Position numbers and translations under genes: made by a program. This document shows, piece after piece, positions 36,902 through 60,426 of a DNA stretch of 64,000 nucleotides. Source of the stretch: Paragordius varius (Eukaryota; Animalia; Nematomorpha); assembly GCA_964247055.1 (NCBI GenBank), contig OZ176053.1, forward strand, positions 9,362,001-9,426,000. Reading direction: 5' to 3'. Position 1 is the first letter of the stretch; the number at the start of each line of letters is the position of its first letter. A model generated the notes under the pieces. That model was not told the DNA's origin, searched no databases, and worked only from the letters and a program-made list of their open reading frames with translations.

Positions 36902-39772
36902 ATATGTTGCGAATCAAATATTTTCTTGTAATAAAGCTGATGTATTTGTTATCTTTCGGAGTTATTCTCGTCCGTTTGTAATGGACAAAATAATAATAAA
37001 ATGTTGAGCTTTTATAATATTACCATAACTTTAATATAGCAATTGGTGGGAATACTCTTTATTTATTAATTAATTCATATATAGAAAAACAGGCTGGTTG
37101 TATTCTATTATTTTTATGGTCCTTTGAATATATTTTATTATATTGTTTTAAATTATTATAAGATTGGCAGTTGGATCCGTTTTTTGAATTGAGTCTAATA
37201 TAATAAGTGATTTGCGTATTACTATCTGTAAACTATTAAACCGAATTAATCTTATATCATTGTTGTTATTAAGGAATATTAAAATCACTTAGAAATGTTT
37301 TTTCTATTCACGTATTATTTTGTTGGAAAGTTCCAACATGACAACTGCGCTCACATCCTTTAAAAAATGCATAATATTTATTAATTTTACAAGTTAATAT
37401 AAACGTCTCCGAATCATTAGACAAAGCTTTAATCTGCGTTAATTTATTTTCTCATTCCCCCTTTTTAAAGAGTTATAAAATTATATAAATTAATCGAATC
37501 CTCATATAACATTATTGAGAAAATAAAAAATTTGAGCTATTTTAAGTGCCATGTTAAGGAGCCGTTGGGTAGACTCAATAAACATGTGGGTGAGTTATAT
37601 CAATAAACCGGCTCAAACACTATTGAACTCATATTTTTACCTTTTAAGAATGGCTGTGGTTTTTAAAGACACGCCCAAAATTTTCCCATCTTAACTGAGG
37701 CCATAAGATACTAGAGGATTTGAACTTATATTGGCTTATCCAAAATGACTATAATGGTCATTCATGTGGCCCTAAAAGTAATGCAAAAATATTTCAAAAA
37801 TATAATACACCTTTATGGTTAAATTTTAAAAACGGGTCGGTGAACTGTTTGCATATATTTTTCTTCCATGCGTTTTTTGAAATACATATCATCATTCTAT
37901 ATAAAATAGTTTCCCCTGACGGTAAACATCAAATTTGACATACTATGTTATTCACTTAATAGCTCCAGAATTTAACTATGAAAATAAAAAACTAGTAAAT
38001 TGTCAATTTCCATTTAAATAAGCTAACTATAAACCAATTTTTATAAATACCTTATAGGACCACTTTCCCCATTAATTACCAATCTTATACCATGCAAAAA
38101 ACCACTAAAGTTTTGACTTTAAATTTTGTGTTTTACGTAAATAATGCACATGGTCCATAAGTATCACCTCAGCCACCGAATAATCTTTATGCTTTTGATA
38201 ATAGCCAATTCATATATTAAACAAGACTGTAAGTTTAATCCGCGATAGCCACAAAAAATTGGCGGACCGCACCACGCATTATCATATAATACACATATAT
38301 TAATAAATATATATATTTATGCATTTTAATATTCACACTTTTCAACTTTTCTTAAATATATGTAAAGGGGTATGTTAATAAAAATTCAGTAAAAGGGGTA
38401 TGTTAATAAAAATTCAGTAAATTCTACATTAACCAGCTGATAATTATTGATCAGAATATCAATGTGCTTTTCATCTGTAAAATTTAGAAAGTGAAATAAA
38501 CCTCCGTGTTTAAACCCACTTTGTATAAAGTGTGAATTAAAAAATTCCCAAAAATTGTGGAACCAAAGTACAACCTGAGAAAATAAAAACGCAAATAAAA
38601 TATAATATAAGTGATAACCTTGATCTATATATATTGAATTTACCACCAATCATCATTACCTTATGTTTTTAAATAAGTTAATAATAAAAAACCCAATTTT
38701 ACATAAATAATCAAAAGACTTAAAGCTTTTTTTGTAATTGTCTCAAAATTAACTTCATTTTAATAGTCTCCTTACAAAATATTGATGAGATGAATATCTT
38801 GAATAAGAGTCAGAATATCTTTAGCTCATTTTATAAAGTTTCAATAAAGATGTTAATTGATATACAGTATTACTGAGTTTCATTGATTAGTGCTAGATAA
38901 GATTAAAAGAAAATGCCATTATTATTAAATTAATGTTAATTTTTTTCACTTATATGGCTATTTGCCAAAAATAAGGCTCTTTGCTCTATATAAAATAAAA
39001 TTAATAACTAGCAATGTATATTTACTGTACTCATATTTATTATGAGCGACTTAGCTGTCAAAACTTGTCGTGCCACAATCGATAAATTTTTTCTGCGTCA
39101 GAGTAAAATTTAATGTTAACTAAATTGATGAAATTAACTGATATGCATTACCAAATATTTTGGAGAAACAATATGTAGGTCATTAAAATAATATCCTAAT
39201 AATATATATTTAAACATAGTGAAAAATGTCATGGTCTCATCCTGTTGGGTATGGCGTTTAATAATTATATAGGAAAGATATACTTTTATGGTAATAGGTC
39301 CTATCGCAAATTAAGCGCAAATTATGGTAGATAATCTTTTTCTGGAAGGTAATTCATTTAAAAAATACTAATCTTTTATTTTAAAGAACCCAAATCTAAG
39401 TTGAATTCAATTATTTGTCCCCAAAAGTCTCAAATTATTTACGCAATGGAGGATAAAATAAACACAAAAAGATTAGATTGTGTAAAGACTAGATTATAAC
39501 AACATTCCTAAAACAATAGCGAAATATAAATTTGGCAAACTTTTATTTAAACACAATTGACCAGTTTTTATTTAAAAATCATTGGTACTTCTTTATATGC
39601 TAAAATTTGCAGCTTAAGATAAAAGGGAATTATTTGGCTAAAATATTATTAAACAATATATAGTAAAAATACTTAAAATTACATTTTAATTATCCTATTA
39701 ATCCAATCAAAATAAATAGATTCTGAAAACCCATATAAAGTTTTAAAAAATAATTTTAATACATAAAGTTAA

Positions 39773-42700
39773 TCTATATATTTATAAAAATGGAAAATGC
39801 TGGCTTTGTGATCTGGTACAGGAAAACCGGTAGACCCAATCAAATCCAAATATCGAAAAAATATAATCATTAATAAATGTCCCGACAATAGCTTCGCCCT
39901 TTTTTTGAAATAGGCTCCCAGTTCGGGCCCACCCCGTATGAAAAACGGGTTTTTTTTGAAAAAAGAAGTCCACAAAATCGTGTTTTTGAGACAATTTTCC
40001 GGAGAACGTGTTGGACCATTCAATTTCAAATATAATTTTTGTTTACTTATTTTCGATTGCGCCGAACATAGTCGAGCCACTTTTTTGATTTAGGCCCTCT
40101 TTTTACCCGCTCCCCCCGTAAAATGCCATTTTTTTCAAAAAACAAAGTCCACAAAAATAATTTTTTAAATCGATTTTTCGTCCTAGGTATGAGACCTTAA
40201 AAATTCAATAAAGATTCCACGTATTCCCTGTTAAAAGGCAAAAATTTTAGTCCACCGTTTATTTGATGATAGCTGCTGGGTAAGGAGCTACCCGCTAAAA
40301 ACTGATTTTTCATATAACTTTGTGAACTGTTTCCGGAAAACCGGTGATCCCAATCAAATCCAAATATCGAAAAAATATAATCATTAATGAATGCCCCGAC
40401 AATAGCTTCGCCCTTTTTTGGAATTAGGTCCCCAGTTCGGGCCCACCCCGTGTGAAAATTGGGTTAAGTCAATTTTTTGGAGAACGTGTTGGACCATTCA
40501 ATTTCAAATATGAATTTTGTTTACTTATTTTTGATCGCGCTGAACATAGTCGAGTCACTTTTTTGATTTAGGCCCTCTTTTTACCCGCTACCCCCGTAAA
40601 ATGCCATTTTTTTCAAAAAACAAAGTCCACAAAAATAATTTTTTAAATCGATTTTTCGTCCTAGGTACGAGACTGTAAAAATTCGAGAAAGATTTTTCGT
40701 ATTGCCTGTTAAAAGGCAAAAATTTTAGTCAAGCGTTTCTTTGATGATAGATGCTGAGTAAGGAGTATCTATCATATGCATAGCATGTTAAAAGATATAT
40801 GGATATTAATACATTATTTATCCTCATCTATATATTTATAAAAATGGAAAATGCTGGCTTTGTGATCTGGTACAGGAAAACCGGTAGACCCAATCAAATC
40901 CAAATATCGAAAAAATATAATCATTAATAAATGTCCCGACAATAGCTTCGCCCTTTTTTTGAAATAGGCTCCCAGTTCGGGCCCACCCCGTATGAAAAAC
41001 GGGTTTTTTTTGAAAAAAGAAGTCCACAAAATCGTGTTTTTGAGACAATTTGCCGGAGAACGTGTTGGACCATTCAATTTCAAATATAATTTTTGTTTAC
41101 TTATTTTCGATTGCGCCGAACATAGTCGAGCCACTTTTTTGATTTAGGCCCTCTTTTTACCCGCTCCCCCCGTAAAATGCCATTTTTTTCAAAAAACAAA
41201 GTCCACAAAAATAATTTTTTAAATCGATTTTTCGTCCTAGGTATGAGACCTTAAAAATTCAATAAAGATTCCACGTATTCCCTGTTAAAAGGCAAAAATT
41301 TTAGTCCACCGTTTATTTGATGATAGCTGCTGGGTAAGGAGCTACCCGCTAAAAACTGATTTTTCATATAACTTTGTGAACTGTTTCCGGAAAACCGGTG
41401 ATCCCAATCAAATCCAAATATCGAAAAAATATAATCATTAATGAATGCCCCGACAATAGCTTCGCCCTTTTTTGGAATTAGGTCCCCAGTTCGGGCCCAC
41501 CCCGTGTGAAAATTGGGTTAAGTCAATTTTTTGGAGAACGTGTTGGACCATTCAATTTCAAATATGAATTTTGTTTACTTATTTTCGATCGCGCTGAACA
41601 TAGTCGAGTCACTTTTTTGATTTAGGCCCTCTTTTTACCCGCTACCCCCGTAAAATGCCATTTTTTTCAAAAAACAAAGTCCACAAAAATAATTTTTTAA
41701 ATCGATTTTTCGTCCTAGGTATGAGACTGTAAAAATTCGAGAAAGATTTTTCGTATTGCCTGTTAAAAGGCAAAAATTTTAGTCAAGCGTTTCTTTGATG
41801 ATAGATGCTGAGTAAGGAGTATCTATCATATGCATAGCATGTTAAAAGATATATGGATATTAATACATTATTTATCCTCATCTATATATTTATAAAAATG
41901 GAAAATGCTGGCTTTGTGATCTGGTACAGGAAAACCGGTAGACCCAATCAAATCCAAATATCGAAAAAATATAATCATTAATAAATGTCCCGACAATAGC
42001 TTCGCCCTTTTTTTGAAATAGGCTCCCAGTTCGGGCCCACCCCGTATGAAAAACGGGTTTTTTTTGAAAAAAGAAGTCCACAAAATCGTGTTTTTGAGAC
42101 AATTTGCCGGAGAACGTGTTGGACCATTCAATTTCAAATATAATTTTTGTTTACTTATTTTCGATTGCGCCGAACATAGTCGAGCCACTTTTTTGATTTA
42201 GGCCCTCTTTTTACCCGCTCCCCCCGTAAAATGCCATTTTTTTCAAAAAACAAAGTCCACAAAAATAATTTTTTAAATCGATTTTTCGTCCTAGGTATGA
42301 GACCTTAAAAATTCAATAAAGATTCCACGTATTCCCTGTTAAAAGGCAAAAATTTTAGTCCACCGTTTATTTGATGATAGCTGCTGGGTAAGGAGCTACC
42401 CGCTAAAAACTGATTTTTCATATAACTTTGTGAACTGTTTCCGGAAAACCGGTGATCCCAATCAAATCCAAATATCGAAAAAATATAATCATTAATGAAT
42501 GCCCCGACAATAGCTTCGCCCTTTTTTGGAATTAGGTCCCCAGTTCGGGCCCACCCCGTGTGAAAATTGGGTTAAGTCAATTTTTTGGAGAACGTGTTGG
42601 ACCATTCAATTTCAAATATGAATTTTGTTTACTTATTTTCGATCGCGCTGAACATAGTCGAGTCACTTTTTTGATTTAGGCCCTCTTTTTACCCGCTACC

Positions 42701-44287: not shown

Positions 44288-47200
44288 ATGCTTATAATCC
44301 AGGGATTTTATTCGTTGTGCAGAAATCTTCGTCCCTTACATACTTCATCCATTTTGTTCCTTAGAAAAGGCACATTAATTGACCAAGCTAATATGAAAGA
44401 AGGTTATGTGCCTAATCTTGATCAAATTCTTGATACGAACGACGGCTATACCCATTTACCACTCCCTTATCACAAAACCGGTGGTAGAGATCTGGAAACG
44501 GGTTAGTTTATTTTTATAATTTTAAGGTCACAGAATAAATCGACGTGGTGGCGGGGGTAAGCGTTATTATGTGATTCCTGATTATAAGCGCGTTCAGTAT
44601 GGACAAGAACCATTTCATGAAAAGGTATATTTTATGTATATTGTATTTGAAAGTATTGAGACAAACAATTATTTTTATGGTGAGAATGTTCATTAATAAG
44701 TAAAATGATATAAGCTACGAGCTTAGAACATTTTAACCTAAGATTCGCTACAAGGAAGTTAATTTAACGTCTATTTTTGACATTTTGGTTTTTTCATCAA
44801 TCTCACCTTCATAATGGTCTTGCGAATATTTGCCGATGGCTGAAACAAATAAAATTATATATAAAGCCGTTTTCACAAAAAGCTGAAAATTATAGTGGAG
44901 AAACGAAAAAAATATTAAAGATGCTTTTAATCAACTATGATACAAAAATCCGACACTCATTATTCTGTCCTGATCAAATATGATGATATATAATCATTGT
45001 TCCAAAAAATTTAGATTAACTCTTTTATTAACATTTAATTCAAATATCTACCAAGATTGATAGTACCATTATTCTATTATAGGATACTTTTTAAAATATC
45101 GATGGATGTAAATTCATTTCAATCCATACTAATCATATCATTCGTCTGGCCACTTGGAATATAACATCTTTAACCAGAAGGAGTCAGGAAATAGCAGCTT
45201 TGCTCTTCTCCAAGAACATCGAAATATGTTGCGTCCAAGAAACTCGCTGGAAGAACACTGGTTCCAAAAACATTCTAGATTATAAATTATTCTGGTCTGG
45301 ATCTAATGGCCGTTCATCAGGTGTCGGAGTTTATGTCAAAAATTCCATTTTATCCAATATCATATCCATCGATTACTGTTCTGAAAGATTATTAGTATTA
45401 AAAATTCAAATCAACAAAAAATCTTTCATATTTTATCAGTATACGCCCCACAAATCAATTGTGATTCAAACTGTAAGGATTTATTCTGGTTGGCTTTATA
45501 TGAAAAAGTCACTGCTATTCCACACACTGATTTCATATTTATTGGGGGTGACCTAAACTCTCACTTTGGTAAAGAATCTTTACATTCAGTACATGGAGGT
45601 TTTGGAATGGATGATTTAAATGAAAATGGTAAAATATTATTAGATTTCGCAAGTAATAATAATTTATCCATCATTAACACCTTTTTTAAAAAAAATGATA
45701 ATAACTTGTTAACCTATATATCCGGCACAAATCGCTCGATGATTGACATAATTATGTCAAGAAAAGAAAACAAATCCCATTTTAAAAATATTAGATCTAT
45801 CCCCGCTCTAGAACTACAGCACAAACTCATTATTGCTGAATTATATAAATCTACATCAACGCAATCACCCATTGGACAAAATAAACCTAAATTTAGATAT
45901 AAAAAATTAGTCGATAATAATATCAATAATAGATTGAAACTCGACACGGAAAGTTCCCTTAAATTAAAAACAACCTCTCCGGAACAACTCTGGAATTCCT
46001 TAAAATATAGCTGCATTGAATCACTAGAGAAGAATGTTGGGAGAATGAAATCTAATAATAAAAAAGCATTTAAATGGTGGTGGCAAATATCCCTGATAGA
46101 TATAATTAAGAAAAAAAAATCTGCATTCCAAAAATGGAAAAAAGAAAAAAGTGCTGACAGCAAAATAAATTACCTCCAAACAAAGAAAGATTGCCGTAAA
46201 GCGATCAGAGCATCGATGAGAAAAATGGGTGAAGAAAAAGGGAAGGAACTAGAAAATGCCATATCTTCTCAATCTGTATATAGATGGGTAAAATATGATA
46301 ATAATATAAGGGCCGAAACAAATGCAATTAGATTACCCAATAATACCATAACCCACGACGCCCAAGTTATAAAAGCCACATGGTATAACCACTATTTTAA
46401 TATTTTTAATAAACCTATAATACCTATGGAAATCACGAACCCTCACCCAACATATTCTTCATTCCAACCATTTACTAATGATGAAATAGAATTTTGTTTA
46501 AACAATTTAAAAAGTAATAAATGCCCCGGTTTATCAGAAATCACAAATGATGTATTCAAAGCCCTAGATCATAATTTATTTTTGGACTATTTCAAAAATC
46601 TTGCGAACAACATAGCATTAAATAATATCATACCCTCTGATTGGCTGAAAAGCTACACAATTCCAATTTATAAGGGCAAAGGAGATCGTTTTAACGTTTC
46701 CAACTTCCGTCCCATACGCATCTTAGAACATGGTTTTAAAATCTTTGAAAATCTGATAGCCAACAGACTCCGTCGACACTGCACCATAGATTCTATGCAA
46801 TTTGGATTTTCAAAAAACAAGGGTACTATAGACGCAATATTTATAATCCGCCAATTACAAAATGCTCACCTGAGAAATCTTCCTCTCCACTATGCGTTTG
46901 TAGACTTGGAACAGGCTTTCGACTCAGTCCCGCAACACCTGATTGCTTGGTCGCTCAGAAGGCAAGGTATAGAGGAAAATATGATACAAATAATAGAAGC
47001 ACTATATAAGAACACCTCAACTGTAATCCGTACAAGCGTTGGCGATACGAACCCCATCCCACTTAAAAACGGCCTACACCAAGGTTCTATATTAAGCCCC
47101 CTTTTATTTATTCTAATTATGGAGGAGATCACAAAAGACATACGAAAAGGCTTACCTTTTGAACTTCTGTACGCTGATGACTTAATATTATGCGCCACAT

Positions 47201-50572: not shown

Positions 50573-50617
50573 GCATTTAAATATTGTAAATAAATTTTTT
50601 TAATATTTGCTCTTGGT

Positions 50618-50840
50618 TTATATATACCATTTGCACTTCAAGAGTGTCCTTGAACACTTCAAGTTGGTCCTTGAACATTTCAAGTTGGTCCTTGAACAGT
50701 TCAAGTTGGTCTTTGAACAATTCAAGTTGGTCCTTGAACAATTCAAGTTGGTCCTTGAACAATTCAAGTTGGTCCTTGAACAGTTCAAGTTGTTCCTTAA
50801 ACATTTCAAGTTGGTCCTTGAACACTTCAAGTTGGTCCTT
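50618..50840 (+). repeat. 21-bp minisatellite (ccttgaacaattcaagttggt, ~9-10 units)
   Basis: Directly visible tandem units; they generate spurious heptad ORFs on both strands. Confidence 0.9.
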
Positions 50841-51261
50841 AAAATATATAAATTTTAATTTAAGCATAATTTTTGCATTTATTTTTTTATTTTATTATTA
50901 ATTTACCTATTTTCTTTATTTATTATATAATTATTCATTTAAAAATATAAATTTTTATTGAAAAACAACTTTTTTGTTTCAAACTTTTTTTTTCAATTGA
51001 ACAAAATTATTGACTTTTAAATGTTTTTAATAAAAATTTTTAATTAATAACCCAGAAAACTTATATATTTTTTCATTTCGTGTTAAAATCTCATCAATAT
51101 CTAAAATTATTTAAAAGAAATTAATAAAGTTATACGGTTTCTCAAAGATTAAATGATATCGATTTAAAATTTATGTTAAATAATAGAAAATAGGTTAAAA
51201 ACAATAAAATAGATGAATTATTTACGATTTGTTTGATAAAGTTCAAAACAAAACAAAAAGG

Positions 51262-51578: not shown

Positions 51579-54443
51579 TTATAAATACAATGCATAAAGT
51601 TTGGCCTCCCAATCATAATTAAATTTTGGCACGAAACCAGCCTCCAAAATGTCTGAAAATCCTTCATCCATTGATGGTTCTTCATATTTATTCCTAATTA
51701 TATATTTTAAATACGTTTTACCATTATTAAAATTGGTAATTTTAAATTTTGAGAAAAATATTTTATCCATCCGACAAGGAAATGGAATAAAGTCAAAAAT
51801 ATACATAAAATATTACTTAAAAAGTTTAAAAACTAATTCGGGCACCGATGGTTTATTGTAGGCGGCTAGCAATAAATTTTCAGAATCCTCTCCATCATCA
51901 TGGGTAGAAATATAGTCGCTTACAATAATATCATTATCTTTATTATTATTGGGTAATTTTATGGAGCTTGTTAAAGCTCTGCCTAATTTATTGTTATGGA
52001 CATAGGCTAACGTTCTACGAAACCTTTCATTGTGTAAACATTGTTCATATGGTGTGTTCATTTTTATCCCACGCACTTGGATATTATATTCTTGAGCTAA
52101 TTCCATATACAGTTTACGAGAAATTCTATCAGGGTTTGTATTGTCAATTATGATGGAGTGTGCTGTAAGTTAAACACGAAATTAATTTGTATTTTAGGTT
52201 ATTTTTGTAAATAAAGGTATACAAAGGTTTTTTGTGAGAAACACGGGCAAAACGAACCAAAATTAACAATAAAAATTACAAAGGTTATTTTGACGCTAAA
52301 AACTTTTCACCCTCCCTATATGTATATTTTTTCATGCATGTTTTTTAGAAGATATATCATATAAACTTCAACGCATGGCCCATTTCAACAGTTTTAATCT
52401 ATAAAAGTGGTTTTAAAAATACAATCATAAAAATTTCTCTGGTTGTGCACAAAAGGTAGAATATTATTTTGCAAAAAAAGATATTTACTCACAAAAAAGG
52501 GATACTGTGATTTATGACAACGGTAGTTTTTAAAAACACTAAAGAAACTTCTCTAAAATGGATATCTGGAAATGTTGATTGGAGCAAAAATTAAAAAAAA
52601 AGTTTAATTAAGAAAAATTAAATATCTTTTTATAGTCGTTTATTATTTGTTGTGAATTTATAAACAAACTTTTTTTAGTTAGAATTTGCCGACACTTTAA
52701 TAAACATTTCTCCTTAGACTTGAGTGTATCCATATCAATTTTGGCGTATTTTCCATTGGTTTGTTTAATTATTTGATTAACAAGTGTGCTTTTACCAGAT
52801 GCTGGAGATCCAATCAATATAATCATCTAATATATAAAATACATTTTCACTTTGGAATTAATTTTATTCTATCTCATTATGTATTCAAAAGTAACGTTTT
52901 TTATATTTTGTATTTTTTCGAAATAATTTAAAATATCCAAATTTTTTCAGCACATTTGCCTTTATTAACAAATAATCTATTATGCAAATTCAATGTAAAG
53001 AAAATATAAAAACTGAAATTTTACTATTATCATGCAATTTTGCATAGTTTTTACAAAAATATTATATATTATAGCTTTTTGTGTAACGTTAAAAAAAGTG
53101 TATAGATAACTTCCATTTCGCACTGGTAATCAAATTGAAATGGTCGAAAGTGATTTCGTTGTAAAAAATTTTGGGGGTCAAATGTAGGAAGTTGATATGG
53201 AATCTTTAAATACAAATCATGAAAATATTCTTCAGGTGTATAAAATTTTAGCCCTGTGTTTAGGGCAAAGAGGCGATCGGCACACGAAAAATCCCTTTTA
53301 AATTTTTTCCCCTTAAAATGATACGCTTCTCTTCCAGCTGCGTCTATTGTATAAATATAATTTAAAATATATAGCAAGCTAAACTGTTTATTTAAACAGG
53401 GTAAATTTAAATATAATTATTTTATTTTGTGGGCTAATATTAAAAAAGATATAGTGATTGATGGTAAAATAATATTATCAGTTAGATATTTAAATTAGTA
53501 GGATATATAAAGAAACAAAAATACTGTTTACATTGAATAAAGGTCTTGTCTAACGTGAATAATAACGCAAAATGAAAAATTATGGTATTACTGCAACTTG
53601 TGTAAATGGAGAATCAAGCCTTTTAAATAAAATTATTTTTTGCACGTCTTTTATCAAATCTGCATGCGGACATTGATAATTTAATTATAAACGTTTAAGG
53701 GTTATATATAATAATCTTAGTTAACACTTATATGGTTACAAAAGAGATAATTTGTGATATAAATCCTGAAATGAAGCTAATTCACTAATAGTGAAATTCG
53801 ACAAGAGTTTATCAGTGTTCGCATAATGCTTTTTTATGCAAATTCAAAGATAGAAATAATATGTTTTTAAAAAAAGAAAAAAATACCTCCTACATAAAAT
53901 GACTTCTCGATATCAACTGTAATTCCATCCATTATAATTTTTGTTAAATATTGCCACATTCCAATATTGGGTTTCCTAAATATATCGTCACTCAAAGCAG
54001 CCAAAACTGTAACGCAAGCGCCTTCAGGAAAAAGAGATTTAACTATTCTTTCGATACGAATTTCAAAAGTATTTAGATTAATATTTCCTTTTTTTGATAA
54101 TAAACCTTTCTAAAATTATTTAATGTATACTTGATTCGTAAAAACAACAAAATTACAACGCTGACTATGGATTTTATGAATTATATTGATGTCACCATGG
54201 TTGCATAATTCCCAATCATCCACATTTTTAGGAAAAACATTTCCAGATTTAGTAGTAATTAACGTTCCATCCAAGTCGAAACATGCAAGCTTTATTCTAG
54301 ATAATTTTTACCTCCTTCGTGAAACTTCTGTTATTGCTTTGATATATAAAAAGAGATCCGGTGTTGGTCCAACTACCATTTGTGTCCGGTTTTTTAATAT
54401 AATTTGTGATACTTTCACTTTTAATTTTTTTTGCTTTGGACAT
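51579..54443 (-). CDS. PNKP: Bifunctional polynucleotide 3'-phosphatase/5'-kinase, 7 exons
   Basis: Exons 54312-54443, 54131-54289, 53887-54109, 53111-53343, 52670-52826, 51817-52162, 51579-51693. HAD motifs [40 protein letters not shown]; P-loop GSPASGKST; IIDNTNPD; EEPSMDEGF. Confidence 0.92.
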
Positions 54444-54999
54444 TTAAATTTGAAATCATGCAGAAGCGTATATCATGTGATTTTTATTTTTACACATGGA
54501 CGCAAAAAATATCCAGATATCCAGAAAAGGGTATGACAGGCATGGTCTTAACCGTCACTGTTTTCCCGCCTTCCTGCGTATTTACACGCCTCAGGGCAAG
54601 GGGACACCAATTCCCTGTTGTGTTGTTCTAAGGCTATCTACAGTAAAATATGTGGTGCAACAGATAAATTAAATTAACAGTATTATAACTATAAAATACC
54701 CGACCTCCGAGCAACTAGATGGCTGTCACTAAACCACCATTGACTGGTGTATGAGGGCAGCAAGGGACATCTTTTGTGGACAGTGGCGACGTGGGTCTGC
54801 TATACCCTTTTCTTGATACAATTTGATATCCACTATCAAAGTAATAAAAGTTACACTCAACCACAAACGCTCCCCCATCGGATCCGCCTTTTTTGCAAAA
54901 AGTTGAAGGAGACGCTTACGTCGACGCTAACCCTTTGCGTAATGAAATGTTTCTCTTCCTCTAAGAATTCTTTCTTAATTTAACTTAATTTTCCAGCCC

Positions 55000-55420
55000 C
55001 CTTTTGACACTAGGGTTACAAAATCTGTGTCCGCAAGGCCCACACTCTACAAGAAAACAACACACGTCAAAGCCATGTTCTACTTGCAGTAGGCTGGGTG
55101 GGCATCACCATTCCAGTGCACCACATTCAGACAACAGTATTCCCAGCACGAGATGCAAGTTATCGGTCTTCAAATTAGTGGCGAGTTGGTATCGTGTTTT
55201 CTTAAAGTAAATATCGCCTGTGATGACTCTTAACAATTTATTCACAACTACCTGAGCCTTGAGGGTATATTAGATAGAATTTGGCCACAACAATCCATAT
55301 AAGATCTTAGGGACGATTAGACTACATATCTTTAACTTCAAACTTTATGTAATACTGATATAAAATGTAACATTAGAGGTGCATTTGGTTATGGGGCTTA
55401 AGAATGTTGGATTATTTACA
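55000..55420 (-). pseudogene. Remnant of a non-LTR retrotransposon RT C-terminal region (not RTE-like; I/Jockey-type?)
   Basis: Minus frame SLIVPKILYGLLW...LKAQVVVNKLLRVITG resembles the LINE thumb motif SLIRP.L.YG..W...LQ..QNK.LR.ITG. Contains stops; boundaries approximate. Confidence 0.5.
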
Positions 55421-55773
55421 CATATGGTTGTTTGATATCAAAAAACTAAAAATATTTATAACCTTGGCCAAATTGACAAATATACTTTCTTTAGCATTTT
55501 GACCGCATGATACAAATATATTTTTTAAAAAATGTAAAATTGTATAGGATTTTTATCACAATTCATCGCCATTTTTCCATTAGTTTTTGAATCGCTAATA
55601 CTACAAACAAATAAATGTATTCTATAATTAATATAAATAATTTACACTGCAAAGGTTTCAAATTAAATTTAGTAAATATTTGATATATACAGTTTATTAG
55701 AGTCTCTTTTTCCTTTTTTATAATAAAGGGTAAGGACTTAAACTCCATCCGGACATAGTGATGATGGAAAAAT

Positions 55774-55842
55774 TGCGTCGCGGGGTTCGAACTCTGGCAG
55801 CCAGTGTACGAGTCGCGCCCTACCTACTATACCATCAAGCGC
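55774..55842 (-). pseudogene. tRNA-derived sequence (degenerate tRNA or SINE head)
   Basis: Minus strand: A box TGGTATAGTAGGTAG, B box GAGTTCGAACC, then TTTTT. Acceptor and anticodon stems pair poorly, so it is not called a functional tRNA. Confidence 0.5.
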
Positions 55843-57458
55843 TGAAATATTTAATGTTAATATAAGTTTACTTCTATAATTTTTTGGAGGTGCCCGAAAT
55901 TCGGACTATAAATTTAAAACTGTAAGAATTATGACTTTTAACTAATACAGGAGAAGACATTAGGTAATTAAAATTTAACCGAATAAGAGTAGTTTGTTTT
56001 ATAATTTAGCCTCTGGAGTAACTACCCCAAAACATGGCATATAAAAATGAAGATTTAATGAAGTTTTATGTAATTGAAATGAGTTTTAAAAATCAAATGT
56101 TGGTAGACAATCTAATTGGTCAAAGTTTTGAGGTGATAGAAATGTTTAACGTCATTGTTCTGAAAAAGTTTCTAATAATATTGTTTTTATGCTGTTTCCA
56201 ACTATATCTCAAATCCCATAAGATACGCTCCAAATTTTTAAAAATTAATTTTTTAGGCAAAGTATGCATTTTTTAAATTTAACTTGTAACACTTAATTTG
56301 ATTATTTAATTACAAGATGACATTGGGGTAATTTTACATCCCAGAACTCAAGGTAAAAACACTACGGTTATAAAAAATTTTAGTAATAATCTAATTATTG
56401 GGCCTTTTTCGCGTTTATTACTTAAGCTTATATTTAACAGTTTTAAAAAGGAACTCCATAACACGGAACTAACAGCTGATTTACAATCAATAAGGATCAA
56501 GTATTTGCGGGTTAAATAAAACTAAGATTTCTCAAGTCAATATGAATTCTCACCATACATTTATTTGTCTGTTGATTAGCGATTAAAATAATTAAAAAAA
56601 AATCAGCGGTGAAAAAGGTTGTCAGATAACGAAGTTTTGTGATTATTTATTATAATTTTTAATTTTGGCCTAATAAGGTAAATAATTTTTAGGATATTCC
56701 AAGTTAATATTTTTGGATATAAAACTACCCGAAAAGATTATGAAGTGAATTAACTCTTAGATAATCAAATGTTAAATCGTTGCGCATTAAGATACCCCAA
56801 AAGCTAATTAAATGATAATAGACTATATATTTAAAATTTCGGCATTTTTCACTATTAAAAATACTAGGTCTTTTTGGAAGGGGCATAAAATATGATCGGA
56901 GAACGCATCTATAAATTTTTTCCAAAATAATTGACCTTAATTCTTATAACGACAACTTCCTCATGGTTTATATATACCAATGTACAATTTAAATTTTTGG
57001 CATATAAAATAAAATATTTTCTTAAAACCAAGTGCCGAGATTGCGGTTTAATTTTTACTGCATGTTTATGACATCAAAATAAGATTCAGACATACTTTGT
57101 TTATTCAAATTTTGAATTTTGTCGAGGCATATTTTATGAAATTTGACAAGCAGAAACAATATTAAGATATATAAAAACTCTTTATATTTAAAGCTGTTGT
57201 ATTCTGGAAATTTTCATTTAACGTTTCGCTCATCTTCAAAATTGTATAAAGTGTGCATTTTAAAATGACAAATTTGAAAAAAAAACATATTTTATAATAA
57301 ATCATAAGTGATATTTAAACAGATTAAGTAATTTACTTTGTTATTATAAAACTTTAAGTGCATAAAATGATTTCTGCAATCTGTATAAAATATATAAAGA
57401 TTGGACATCACAAATATCTAATCAAAATTTTGGTATTTATTTAAGCAAAAGAAAAATA

Positions 57459-57587: not shown

Positions 57588-60426
57588 AATTGGTTATATT
57601 GATTAAAAAATGTAACTTGATATTGGAAATTCTTATTATCTGGTCTTGTTGTTTCAACTATATTAAGCATGGCATCAATTTTACAATGCAAACGCCCATC
57701 AGCAATAAATCTTGATAACTCTCTGCAAAATAAAACATTAGTTTAAAAAATTATGAAAACTCAAATGGGTGTGGTGTGTTTATGTATAAATATATGATAT
57801 AAAAATATATTGCGTAAAAATAAATTTGTATTCATTAATATAGTTTTAAAACTATATAAAATTATGCAATCCAATATTTTAACTTATTCTATATTAATAG
57901 TATTTATACTCATCCTTAGAAGAAAAGATATGAAATTAAGTACGATGGTTAAAATTTAATTTATCAATATAAAGAAAAATATTTAACTCATCATCAATAA
58001 GAATATGCGAAAATCACCTATCAATAAACTGGGTACTGACACCAAATGCTTTAGCCATAAAATCGAGCGATAAACTTTTGTAGGATTGTAGGAGTTGACT
58101 GTAAGCTAAAATACGCATTTCACGGCAATAGTATCTGTAATGAGGTGCCAAATATCGATCATACTTCAATATAGTTTCCACTTCGGCTAACCACAGAATT
58201 TAATTTTTTAAAAAACATATTTATAAAAATTTATAAGCTTATGTGAATAATTTGAATAGTGAAACAAGCAAAAATAAAATACAAAAGATATTTAAGTCTA
58301 TTCAATTAACCTAATTTCTGGAAAAATACATCATATCGACAATCATATAATGAGTGTAGGTATTCACGAATCAAAGGTATCCCATATAAAACCTCGGTAA
58401 TTTCAGCTCCCTTTATAATCTATAATTGTAAAATTAGGATTGTATATTTACAAATTAATTATGGTGAAAATATACAACAAATCAATAAAAAACAATAAAA
58501 ATCATAGAGCTTAGCATAAAAATTATAATGTTTTAGCATATAAATTATAAAAGGGTTGAATTTCGGATCGTGATGATACATTAAGTTTGTTTTAAATGAT
58601 ATTTAAAAATAATGATTGTTTATTTCAAACGGCTAAAATATTTAGATGTGAGGTATAAGAAATTATATGATTTTATAGATAAAAAAAACCTAATAACAAA
58701 ATATATTTATACTCATATAGAATTTAATAATCGTAGCAATATTCGAAAATAATTCAAGTTTTTATATTTTTTAAAACAATTTTCACAAAATATAGGATAT
58801 TTAGGGCTAATATACACATGTGCACATTAGTTTAAACCACTGGCTTATAAAACGAATTTATTATTGTTTACCATTTGATTTAGGTATAAAAAGAATATTT
58901 CAGAGTTTGCCGAGTAGCATATACTAAATGGTTTTAGTTTAAATGTGTATATTTATGTGATGATTAATTTTCAATATTGAATCAAAATAATCATGCTAAT
59001 TTTAAATTAACAATAGAACCGACATCTAAATATAAATCATTGGACCTAAATCCAATAGATATTAAAACTTTTCGTAACAGTAAAAATATGCAAAACTAAA
59101 GACTAAAAGTTAACTTAATACTAGTGGAATCAAAAAAGTTTAGAATTCGATCCCGATATATACCATATGTTTAAATTAATTACAAAGATAAAACGTGAAC
59201 ATATATTATACGATAGAATGAACCTTTGATTTTATATCTGTACGTGGAATCGCAACCACACTACATATCACAGCATATGTGATGTAATTTTTATAATCCA
59301 TAAGTTCGTAGGAAGTAAAAGTCGAAACCGTATCCAAAAACAATCGACTGGCCGTTTTAAAATCTCGAATACACATGGAATAAATGGCTTGATAGGCTTT
59401 TAGGCGATTTCTTCGGTCCCAATCTCCACCCTCTTCAATCAAACTAACACATGTTTTTTAGGAAAATAAACTTTAAATATTATAATGGTATTTAAGTAAA
59501 TTTATGGAGTTTTTTTAAAAAATTTTGGAGCAGAATGAATTATTAATTGGTTGTAATATTGCATTATATTTTGTTTATATTTGTTAATATTACTATCCCA
59601 CAGAAGTATTAAAATGTTACAAAGAGTAATCATTTTCTATTTAAATTGAAAAAAATGTAATTTTAATACAAGGTTTATATAAAACTAGCTAAATGTCATT
59701 GCATAAATAATTTCAAAGGTATTAAAAGATTGTCTTGATAAATATTAAAATATAAACTATTGGGCAAATTTTTAATAGAATGATTCTTTGAATATAACAA
59801 TAAACAAACCTCTTTGCCTTCTCGATATTTCGACTAATAATATCATGGTCCAAATAAAACAAACCAATTCTTATTTGGAAAAAAACCAAATCAAGTCTAT
59901 GACCGATAGCAGTAGTCTTTTCATTCGCATATCTAATTGCAGTCATCGTTGCTTCCTACATTATATAATTATAAATAAAAAATACATTCTAAAAAAGTAC
60001 TAAAATTATATTATAAATAAAAAATACATTCTAAAAAAGTACTAACAATAATTATATCCGCTTACTTTATCCCCGATTTTACATAAATATTCAGCTTTAG
60101 CCAATAGTGCAGCTCGAACCTCGGTATCTCCTGAATTTTGTTGTGCATCAGATATGGCATCTTCAAGCTCCTTTAATTTTTCTTGATTATTAATATTCAT
60201 ATTTTCAAAAAGTTTTTCATCAAAATGCCATTTTAGATCTTCACATACATTTTTATAAAACGGTGCCATATCTAAAAATTTTAAATATAAAAAAACGATT
60301 GGATCTAATAGCTTCTATAATTTTTTCAGTTAGCGCTTTATCATCTTTATACTTCGGAGTTTTCAACAGAAAGAGCCATTGTGCTATTTCTAAATCAGGG
60401 TTCTTTGCTAATGCTTCTTGTTCCAT
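57459..60426 (-). CDS. PSMD6: 26S proteasome non-ATPase regulatory subunit 6 (Rpn7), 8 exons
   Basis: Exons 60297-60426, 60066-60271, 59810-59955, 59224-59443, 58311-58419, 58018-58186, 57617-57722, 57459-57527, all GT-AG and phase-consistent. Product contains [82 protein letters not shown]. Confidence 0.95.
57547..57584. repeat. (TA)n microsatellite in the last PSMD6 intron
   Basis: Visible run; similar runs at ~30314-30335, ~33650-33672 and ~35252-35276. Confidence 0.9.

Follow-up and report, generated by a model that had tools for sequence, protein, structure and literature searches.

The PNKP gene and its surroundings

The 64-kb window (the whole stretch of DNA that was analysed) carries a PNKP gene on its minus strand, at positions 51579..54443. 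An exon-by-exon build yielded seven exons and a coding sequence of 1365 nt, which corresponds to 454 codons plus a stop (Table 1). The introns are all of the GT-AG type and measure, in gene order, 22, 21, 543, 284, 507 and 123 nt; three codons, for Asp, Thr and Lys, are divided by them. No stop occurs in any of the seven exons (451 in-frame exon codons were examined and all are open) and the catalytic motifs DxDGT, FTNQ, RKP, GDAAGR, GxxxxGKS/T and IDNTN are intact. A profile search of the whole genome recovered a single PNK3P locus, with a match that spans exactly one TAG and one TAA. Judged from these data, the predicted gene is single-copy and intact, and encodes a HAD-type 3'-phosphatase together with a P-loop 5'-kinase.

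The homology of the exons was assessed by querying them one by one. In this way, the Pfam profile PNK3P was matched by exon 2 at positions 3-54 (1.9e-12), by exon 3 at positions 58-124 (3.8e-14) and by exon 4 at positions 126-161 (3.5e-9), each with a score of 37-53 bits against a curated cut-off of 22. The AAA_33 matches to the kinase exons fell below the cut-off when scored exon by exon. In mouse PNKP (1yj5_A) exon 2 corresponds to residues 26-79, ending at FTNQ, and exon 3 to residues 85-148, while exon 6 corresponds to residues 275-322 of the kinase (E 1.5e-4). For exons 1 and 7 we found neither a Pfam family match nor a significant PNKP match in the PDB, and when exon 3 was used in a word search, no relatives of exon size came up as candidates.

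An upstream exon is needed, because the frame of exon 2 has no ATG between its upstream stop and LACFDLDGT. The ends of intron 1 (GTAAAAATTATCTAGAATAAAG), which lies 159 nt upstream of intron 2, constitute the sole GT..AG pair that links the frame of exon 1 to that of exon 2, and it is from these frames that we infer exon 1 and the 22-nt intron. The first two introns, both tiny, are located no more than around 330 nt from the ATG; the four ordinary ones (123-543 nt) begin further downstream.

The domains, first a PNK3P HAD phosphatase and then a P-loop kinase, are arranged as in mouse PNKP (1yj5, 3zvl), and the motifs are conserved as well. The protein differs from mammalian PNKP in that exon 1 is 44 codons long, that a long low-complexity insert is present in exon 6 and that an N-terminal FHA domain, as found in the mammalian form, was not seen in exon 1, the exon searched for it, which lacks a Pfam match. 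PNKP forms without FHA may exist.

Table 1. Predicted exons and introns of the PNKP gene and two further candidate tiny introns of the window
Feature	Position in window	Strand	Content	Basis
PNKP exon 1	54312..54443	-	ATG at 54443; 44 codons; ends in phase 0	Predicted from frame
PNKP intron 1	54290..54311	-	22 nt; GTAAAAAT...GAATAAAG; GC 0.18	Predicted
PNKP exon 2	54131..54289	-	53 codons, LACFDLDGT...FVVFTNQ; HAD motifs I and II	Pfam PNK3P, mouse PNKP
PNKP intron 2	54110..54130	-	21 nt; phase 0; GTATACATTAAATAATTTTAG	In-frame TAA 54118-54116 and TAG 54112-54110
PNKP exon 3	53887..54109	-	KGLLSKK...RKP...FYVG and first base of Asp codon	Pfam PNK3P, mouse PNKP
PNKP intron 3	53344..53886	-	543 nt; phase 1; GTATTT...CAATAG	Split codon G/AC is the Asp of GDAAGR
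PNKP exon 4	53111..53343	-	DAAGR...FSCADRLFA	Pfam PNK3P
PNKP intron 4	52827..53110	-	284 nt	Frame joining
PNKP exon 5	52670..52826	-	Kinase P-loop GSPASGKST	P-loop family matches, AAA_33 1.5e-4
PNKP intron 5	52163..52669	-	507 nt; phase 1	Frame joining
PNKP exon 6	51817..52162	-	IIIDNTNPD...HNERFR	Mouse PNKP kinase, AAA_33 profile 72-119
PNKP intron 6	51694..51816	-	123 nt; phase 2	Frame joining
PNKP exon 7	51579..51693	-	Ends in TAA	Frame continuity
Tiny intron	44502-44526		25 nt
Tiny intron	60272-60296		25 nt

Some other features of the neighbourhood can be mentioned. The region upstream of the PNKP start (54540-55300, minus strand) lies in a stretch of raised GC content (0.34 for 54001-56000 versus 0.24-0.26 on either side; the genome as a whole has a GC content of 0.28). 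None of the frames examined there is open over a long distance; a promoter, a 5'UTR and a repeat fragment are all conceivable. Just downstream of the gene, at 50580-50898, there is a tandem repeat with long open frames on both strands and units of the KDQLELF type, which is probably satellite-like and non-coding. At 39772-42197 (minus strand) three near-identical open frames of 106-109 codons are spaced around 1,050 nt apart in a tandem array, and frames like these are also present at other places in the 200 kb upstream of the window. Rfam and tRNA scans of the 64-kb window found nothing.

The 21-nt segment behind the FTNQ motif

Intron 2 has a GC content of 0.14 (86% A+T), starts with GTATAC and ends with TTTTAG, so that a run of four T residues lies just before the AG. 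The codons for F-V-V-F-T-N-Q precede it and those for K-G-L-L (KGLLSKK) follow it, which puts the segment directly after the HAD motif FTNQ. Translated in the frame of the exons it reads VYIK*F*, and its excision keeps the frame, as the segment is in phase 0 and its length is a multiple of three (3n). The first-pass annotation had the sequence, coordinates and frame of the segment right, as well as its length class and the TNQ/KGLL junction. It had also reported an in-frame stop; the TAA is indeed present, but there are two stops instead of one, the second being the TAG of the acceptor itself. The statement that this is the shortest well-supported intron of the window agrees with our inventory, in which the other credible tiny introns measure 22, 25 and 25 nt.

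The homology on both sides makes it possible to evaluate where the segment begins and ends. The PNK3P profile matches that flank it abut, the first ending at position 54 and the next starting at 58, and at the junction of exons 2 and 3 the spliced product is 2 residues longer than mouse PNKP. Six frame-keeping GT..AG pairs of at most 60 nt would remove both stops, and the FVVFTNQ strand survives in the 21-nt choice alone. A different splice pattern, with an intron of 36-60 nt from an upstream GT or with the AAAG acceptor 4 nt downstream, could draw on the five further pairs, but each of these takes away part of FVVFTNQ (HAD motif II), which has aligned counterparts in both the Pfam profile and mouse PNKP. 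The 25-nt variant that uses the AAAG acceptor reads as a frameshift with a stop within around 10 codons. We consider such a pattern very unlikely; the other boundaries were rejected as they all cut into FTNQ.

Translation of the seven codons, with both stops read through or recoded, was considered as well. In many ciliates TAA and TAG specify Gln, and the two stops of the segment are precisely of this type. Within the PNKP gene, on the other hand, the 15 Gln codons are CAA (13) or CAG (2), the exons are not interrupted by TAA or TAG and the gene terminates at TAA. Long domain matches devoid of stops were found elsewhere in the genome (Ras 1-160, Arf 1-173, UQ_con 1-138, Proteasome 2-189 and AAA 1-130), and the seven residues would form an insertion relative to the PNK3P profile. 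A reassigned code or read-through had been named in the first-pass annotation as what would speak against the intron. Given the use of CAA and CAG for Gln and the stop-free exons and domain matches, we rejected a variant code: the code is the standard one, and read-through of the two stops is considered excluded on the evidence of these sequences, its probability being next to nil.

Then there are two readings in which the segment is no intron at all. It could be a recent 21-bp insertion, or a sign that the gene is a young pseudogene, in which case the GT and AG at its ends are a coincidence. What counts in favour of this is the size, as 21 nt is, to our knowledge, smaller than any intron size established for ecdysozoan-type animals. 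A difficulty for the intron itself is that its 5' splice site and branch site would be around 14 nt apart, much closer than animal spliceosomes, those of dicyemids excepted, are known to handle. Against the insertion or pseudogene reading stand the exact GT and AG ends at a codon boundary, a composition equal to that of the local class of tiny introns (see below), and the fact that another tiny intron is required 159 nt upstream in the same gene. In addition, the locus is the only one for PNK3P in the genome, and its 451 exon codons are open with catalytic motifs intact. A pseudogene is unlikely because the gene is the sole copy and every catalytic motif is preserved, and we regard the reading as a whole as improbable. 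An error in sequencing or assembly that created a spurious segment is more improbable still, considering the assembly of 110.6 Mb in only 44 contigs, the clean GT and AG ends and the repeated encounter with segments of the same class.

On the basis of the above, intron 2 is very probably a genuine intron. Our confidence in this is the sum of two readings: one in which the stops are present by chance, which we moderately favour, and one in which they are selected, which is tentative. These are discussed in the following section.

Candidate tiny introns and the origin of the in-frame stops

To describe the tiny introns around the locus, we picked 16 candidates by hand from the window and the 200 kb upstream of it (264 kb together). 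They start with GT(A/T), are 82-92% A+T and end with A/T-AG. In an automatic scan of the same 264 kb, based on codon usage and open frames, 38 GT..AG candidates were obtained versus 31-34 for decoy dinucleotides. The local class, as picked by eye, is thus suggested by its sequences and not proven. No branch-site motif stands out among the 16; a TAAT near the 3' end is present in 4 of them, where 3.1 are expected.

Several apparent tiny introns outside the window deserve mention. A gene of the RRM type, which we take as PABPN1-like from its sequence (around C4:9189268-9189513, minus strand; window-relative -172732 to -172487), seems to hold three tiny introns (23, 27 and 25 nt) in a stretch of 250 nt, and the one of 27 nt is 3n and bears a stop. 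At C5:5361143-5361730 (plus strand) four abutting Ras-profile matches that differ in frame together span positions 1-160 of the profile over 588 nt, which implies that putative tiny introns, several in number, are distributed over a whole small GTPase gene and extend beyond its first exon. A gene with at least five cadherin repeats forms a single open frame of 881 codons (L015:4967-7609, plus strand), and its presence identifies the genome as one of the animal type. This frame includes an in-frame GT..AG segment of 30 nt that is 80% A+T and free of stops (window-relative -94567 to -94538), a candidate for a stop-free 3n intron.

The first-pass annotation had proposed that the stop in intron 2 fits selection, in the sense that tiny introns of 3n length keep a stop so that NMD catches the transcript when they are retained. 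There are reasons to take the proposal seriously. Intron 2 is of 3n length with two stops inside, gene families of NMD and the EJC were found in the genome, and the rule has been documented for short ciliate introns, as described in PMC5014332, which cites Jaillon et al. 2008. To assess what chance would produce, we simulated introns of 21 nt whose composition was that of the local tiny-intron interiors (A 0.41, T 0.51, G 0.035 and C 0.04). At least one in-frame stop was present in 71% of them in phase 0, in 55% in phase 1 and in 53% in phase 2, and in phase 0 a TAG acceptor is a stop by construction. Among the local tiny introns that are not 3n, and which serve as controls, 7 of the 11 have a stop in their own phase. 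The argument from the stop hence does not carry: because a stop is expected by chance at a rate of 0.71, the single case of intron 2 is nearly uninformative on selection, with a likelihood ratio of around 1.4.

Neither can the local 3n introns decide the matter. They were found only through their stops, and that all of them carry one is an ascertainment effect, because a stop-free 3n intron looks like coding sequence. Such introns are not visible from sequence, lists of 3n introns that all have stops are biased, and the statement that every 3n micro-intron has a stop, when derived in this way, cannot count as evidence of selection. Moreover, a set of 16 candidates has no power to test for stop-free 3n introns.

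A less biased view was sought in homology. For each match to a Pfam family in the genome search we subtracted the profile positions spanned from the codons spanned; an in-frame insertion of at least 6 codons is then either a 3n intron that was read through or a true insertion in the protein, which are not told apart. The criterion was fixed after inspection of the Ras matches alone, before the other families were considered, and later expanded to more families. The matches with and without stops numbered 6 and 4 for Ras, 5 and 0 for Arf, 1 and 2 for UQ_con, 1 and 1 for Proteasome, 2 and 2 for AAA and 4 and 3 for Mito_carr. Two more stop-free Arf matches were left out, being Ras-family genes picked up by the Arf profile, and one UQ_con match with 8 stops was left out as well. 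Both stop-free UQ_con matches have 12 extra codons from profile position 74 onward, which is presumably where UBE2G and UBE2R have their acidic loop. Examples of stop-free matches are C3:8184099-8184332, C4:7577877-7578173, C2:7965188-7965373, C6:4293977-4294183 and C2:11111457-11111621. The Arf insertions, 5 of 5 with stops, are what selection would predict, but over the six families 19 insertions have stops and 12 do not, counts in which introns and protein loops may be mixed, and for the intron-like sizes of 7-11 codons the numbers are 9 and 7. The stop-free share of 39-44% equals the value expected without selection, with the reservation that the matches may be introns or protein loops. 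There is no visible deficit, and the outcome neither supports nor refutes a depletion of stop-free 3n introns.

Given these numbers, selection on the stop of a genuine 21-nt intron is a possibility that we hold to be clearly the less probable one. The explanation that we lean towards as a whole, with moderate confidence, is that of a genuine U2-type GT-AG intron of 21 nt that has to be spliced and in which the stops are a by-product of composition.

In the course of the genome searches two repeated loci were noted. The Arf loci C10:1742354-1742869 and C11:1307069-1307584 score identically (5.0e-75, profile 1-173), contain no stops and share the same open frame of 234 aa; they may represent duplicated contigs or haplotigs, or else an intronless copy of recent origin. 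At C2:1811658-1995730 there is an rDNA array with at least 12 identical 18S copies, 9-46 kb apart.

Proposed fate of the transcript and comparison with known tiny-intron systems

In the explanation that we favour, the segment at 54130-54110 would be a U2-type GT-AG spliceosomal intron in phase 0, the second of the PNKP gene. It would belong to a class in this genome of introns of 21-33 nt and around 85-90% A+T, which appear to be located near gene starts and alongside ordinary introns. Were the intron retained, translation of an otherwise intact PNKP would end at codon 102, past HAD motifs I and II only, which bears out the earlier claim that splicing must be obligatory if the gene is functional. 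A stop at codon 102 lies far upstream of four more exon junctions, and NMD should act on the retained transcript in the ordinary way. The genome has matches to the UPF1 zinc-binding, Upf2 and Mago nashi families. NMD of the retained form is plausible because its stop precedes these junctions and because the NMD families are present; both the excision of intron 2 and this fate of the retained transcript are what we infer from the gene model. The two in-frame stops themselves would most simply result from the A/T-rich composition combined with a TAG acceptor in phase 0, and would not have been selected. As a side observation, the UPF1 zinc-binding matches come in two sets around 24 kb apart (C1:5941468-5942484 and C1:5917851-5918458), possibly a tandem duplicate of UPF1.

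The obvious reference is Paramecium, of which the introns measure 20-35 nt (around 25 on average) and those of 3n length carry stops (Jaillon et al. 2008, as cited in PMC5014332). According to PMC5014332, the ciliate rule rests on annotated introns, on a measured deficit of 3n introns and on controls of length 3n+1 and 3n+2. The likeness to the introns discussed here lies in the GT-AG ends, the A/T-rich composition and the size of around 20-30 nt, and in the principle that a stop in a 3n intron would make the retained transcript visible to NMD. The differences are at least as clear. The genome is of the animal type, as evidenced by its cadherin gene, it uses the standard code, and tiny introns stand beside introns of 123-543 nt within the single PNKP gene. 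The signatures of Paramecium, a 3n deficit and an excess of stops over the 3n+1 and 3n+2 introns, are not demonstrated in this genome, where the counts are 7 of 11 locally and 19 against 12 in the families. Furthermore, TGA is the sole stop codon in Paramecium. The parallel drawn in the first-pass annotation therefore applies to the principle but not to the individual codons. That an animal spliceosome removes introns of 21 nt while NMD-linked selection keeps the 3n ones stop-bearing, as in ciliates, which would mean that the 'translational control of splicing' arose independently in animals, is in our opinion doubtful.

Among animals the nearest case is that of the dicyemids, with introns of 26.2 +/- 1.9 nt (n=16; PMC2222250). 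Dicyema shares with the present case an animal lineage and introns shorter than 30 nt, which in Dicyema are located at conserved positions. All introns of the Dicyema genes studied are tiny, whereas the PNKP gene described here has two classes, the first two introns, at the start of the gene, being tiny and the rest ordinary, and with its 21 nt intron 2 is well below the Dicyema mean. In two hairworm genome preprints the word intron is absent. Genes of this kind will be called wrongly by standard gene finders, which would split the PNKP gene or label it a pseudogene. If real, intron 2 would rank among the shortest introns known in any animal. Its confirmation by RNA would lower the size limit for animal splicing, with an intron of 21 nt next to introns of 500 nt, and would mean that two modes of intron recognition operate side by side in one transcript.
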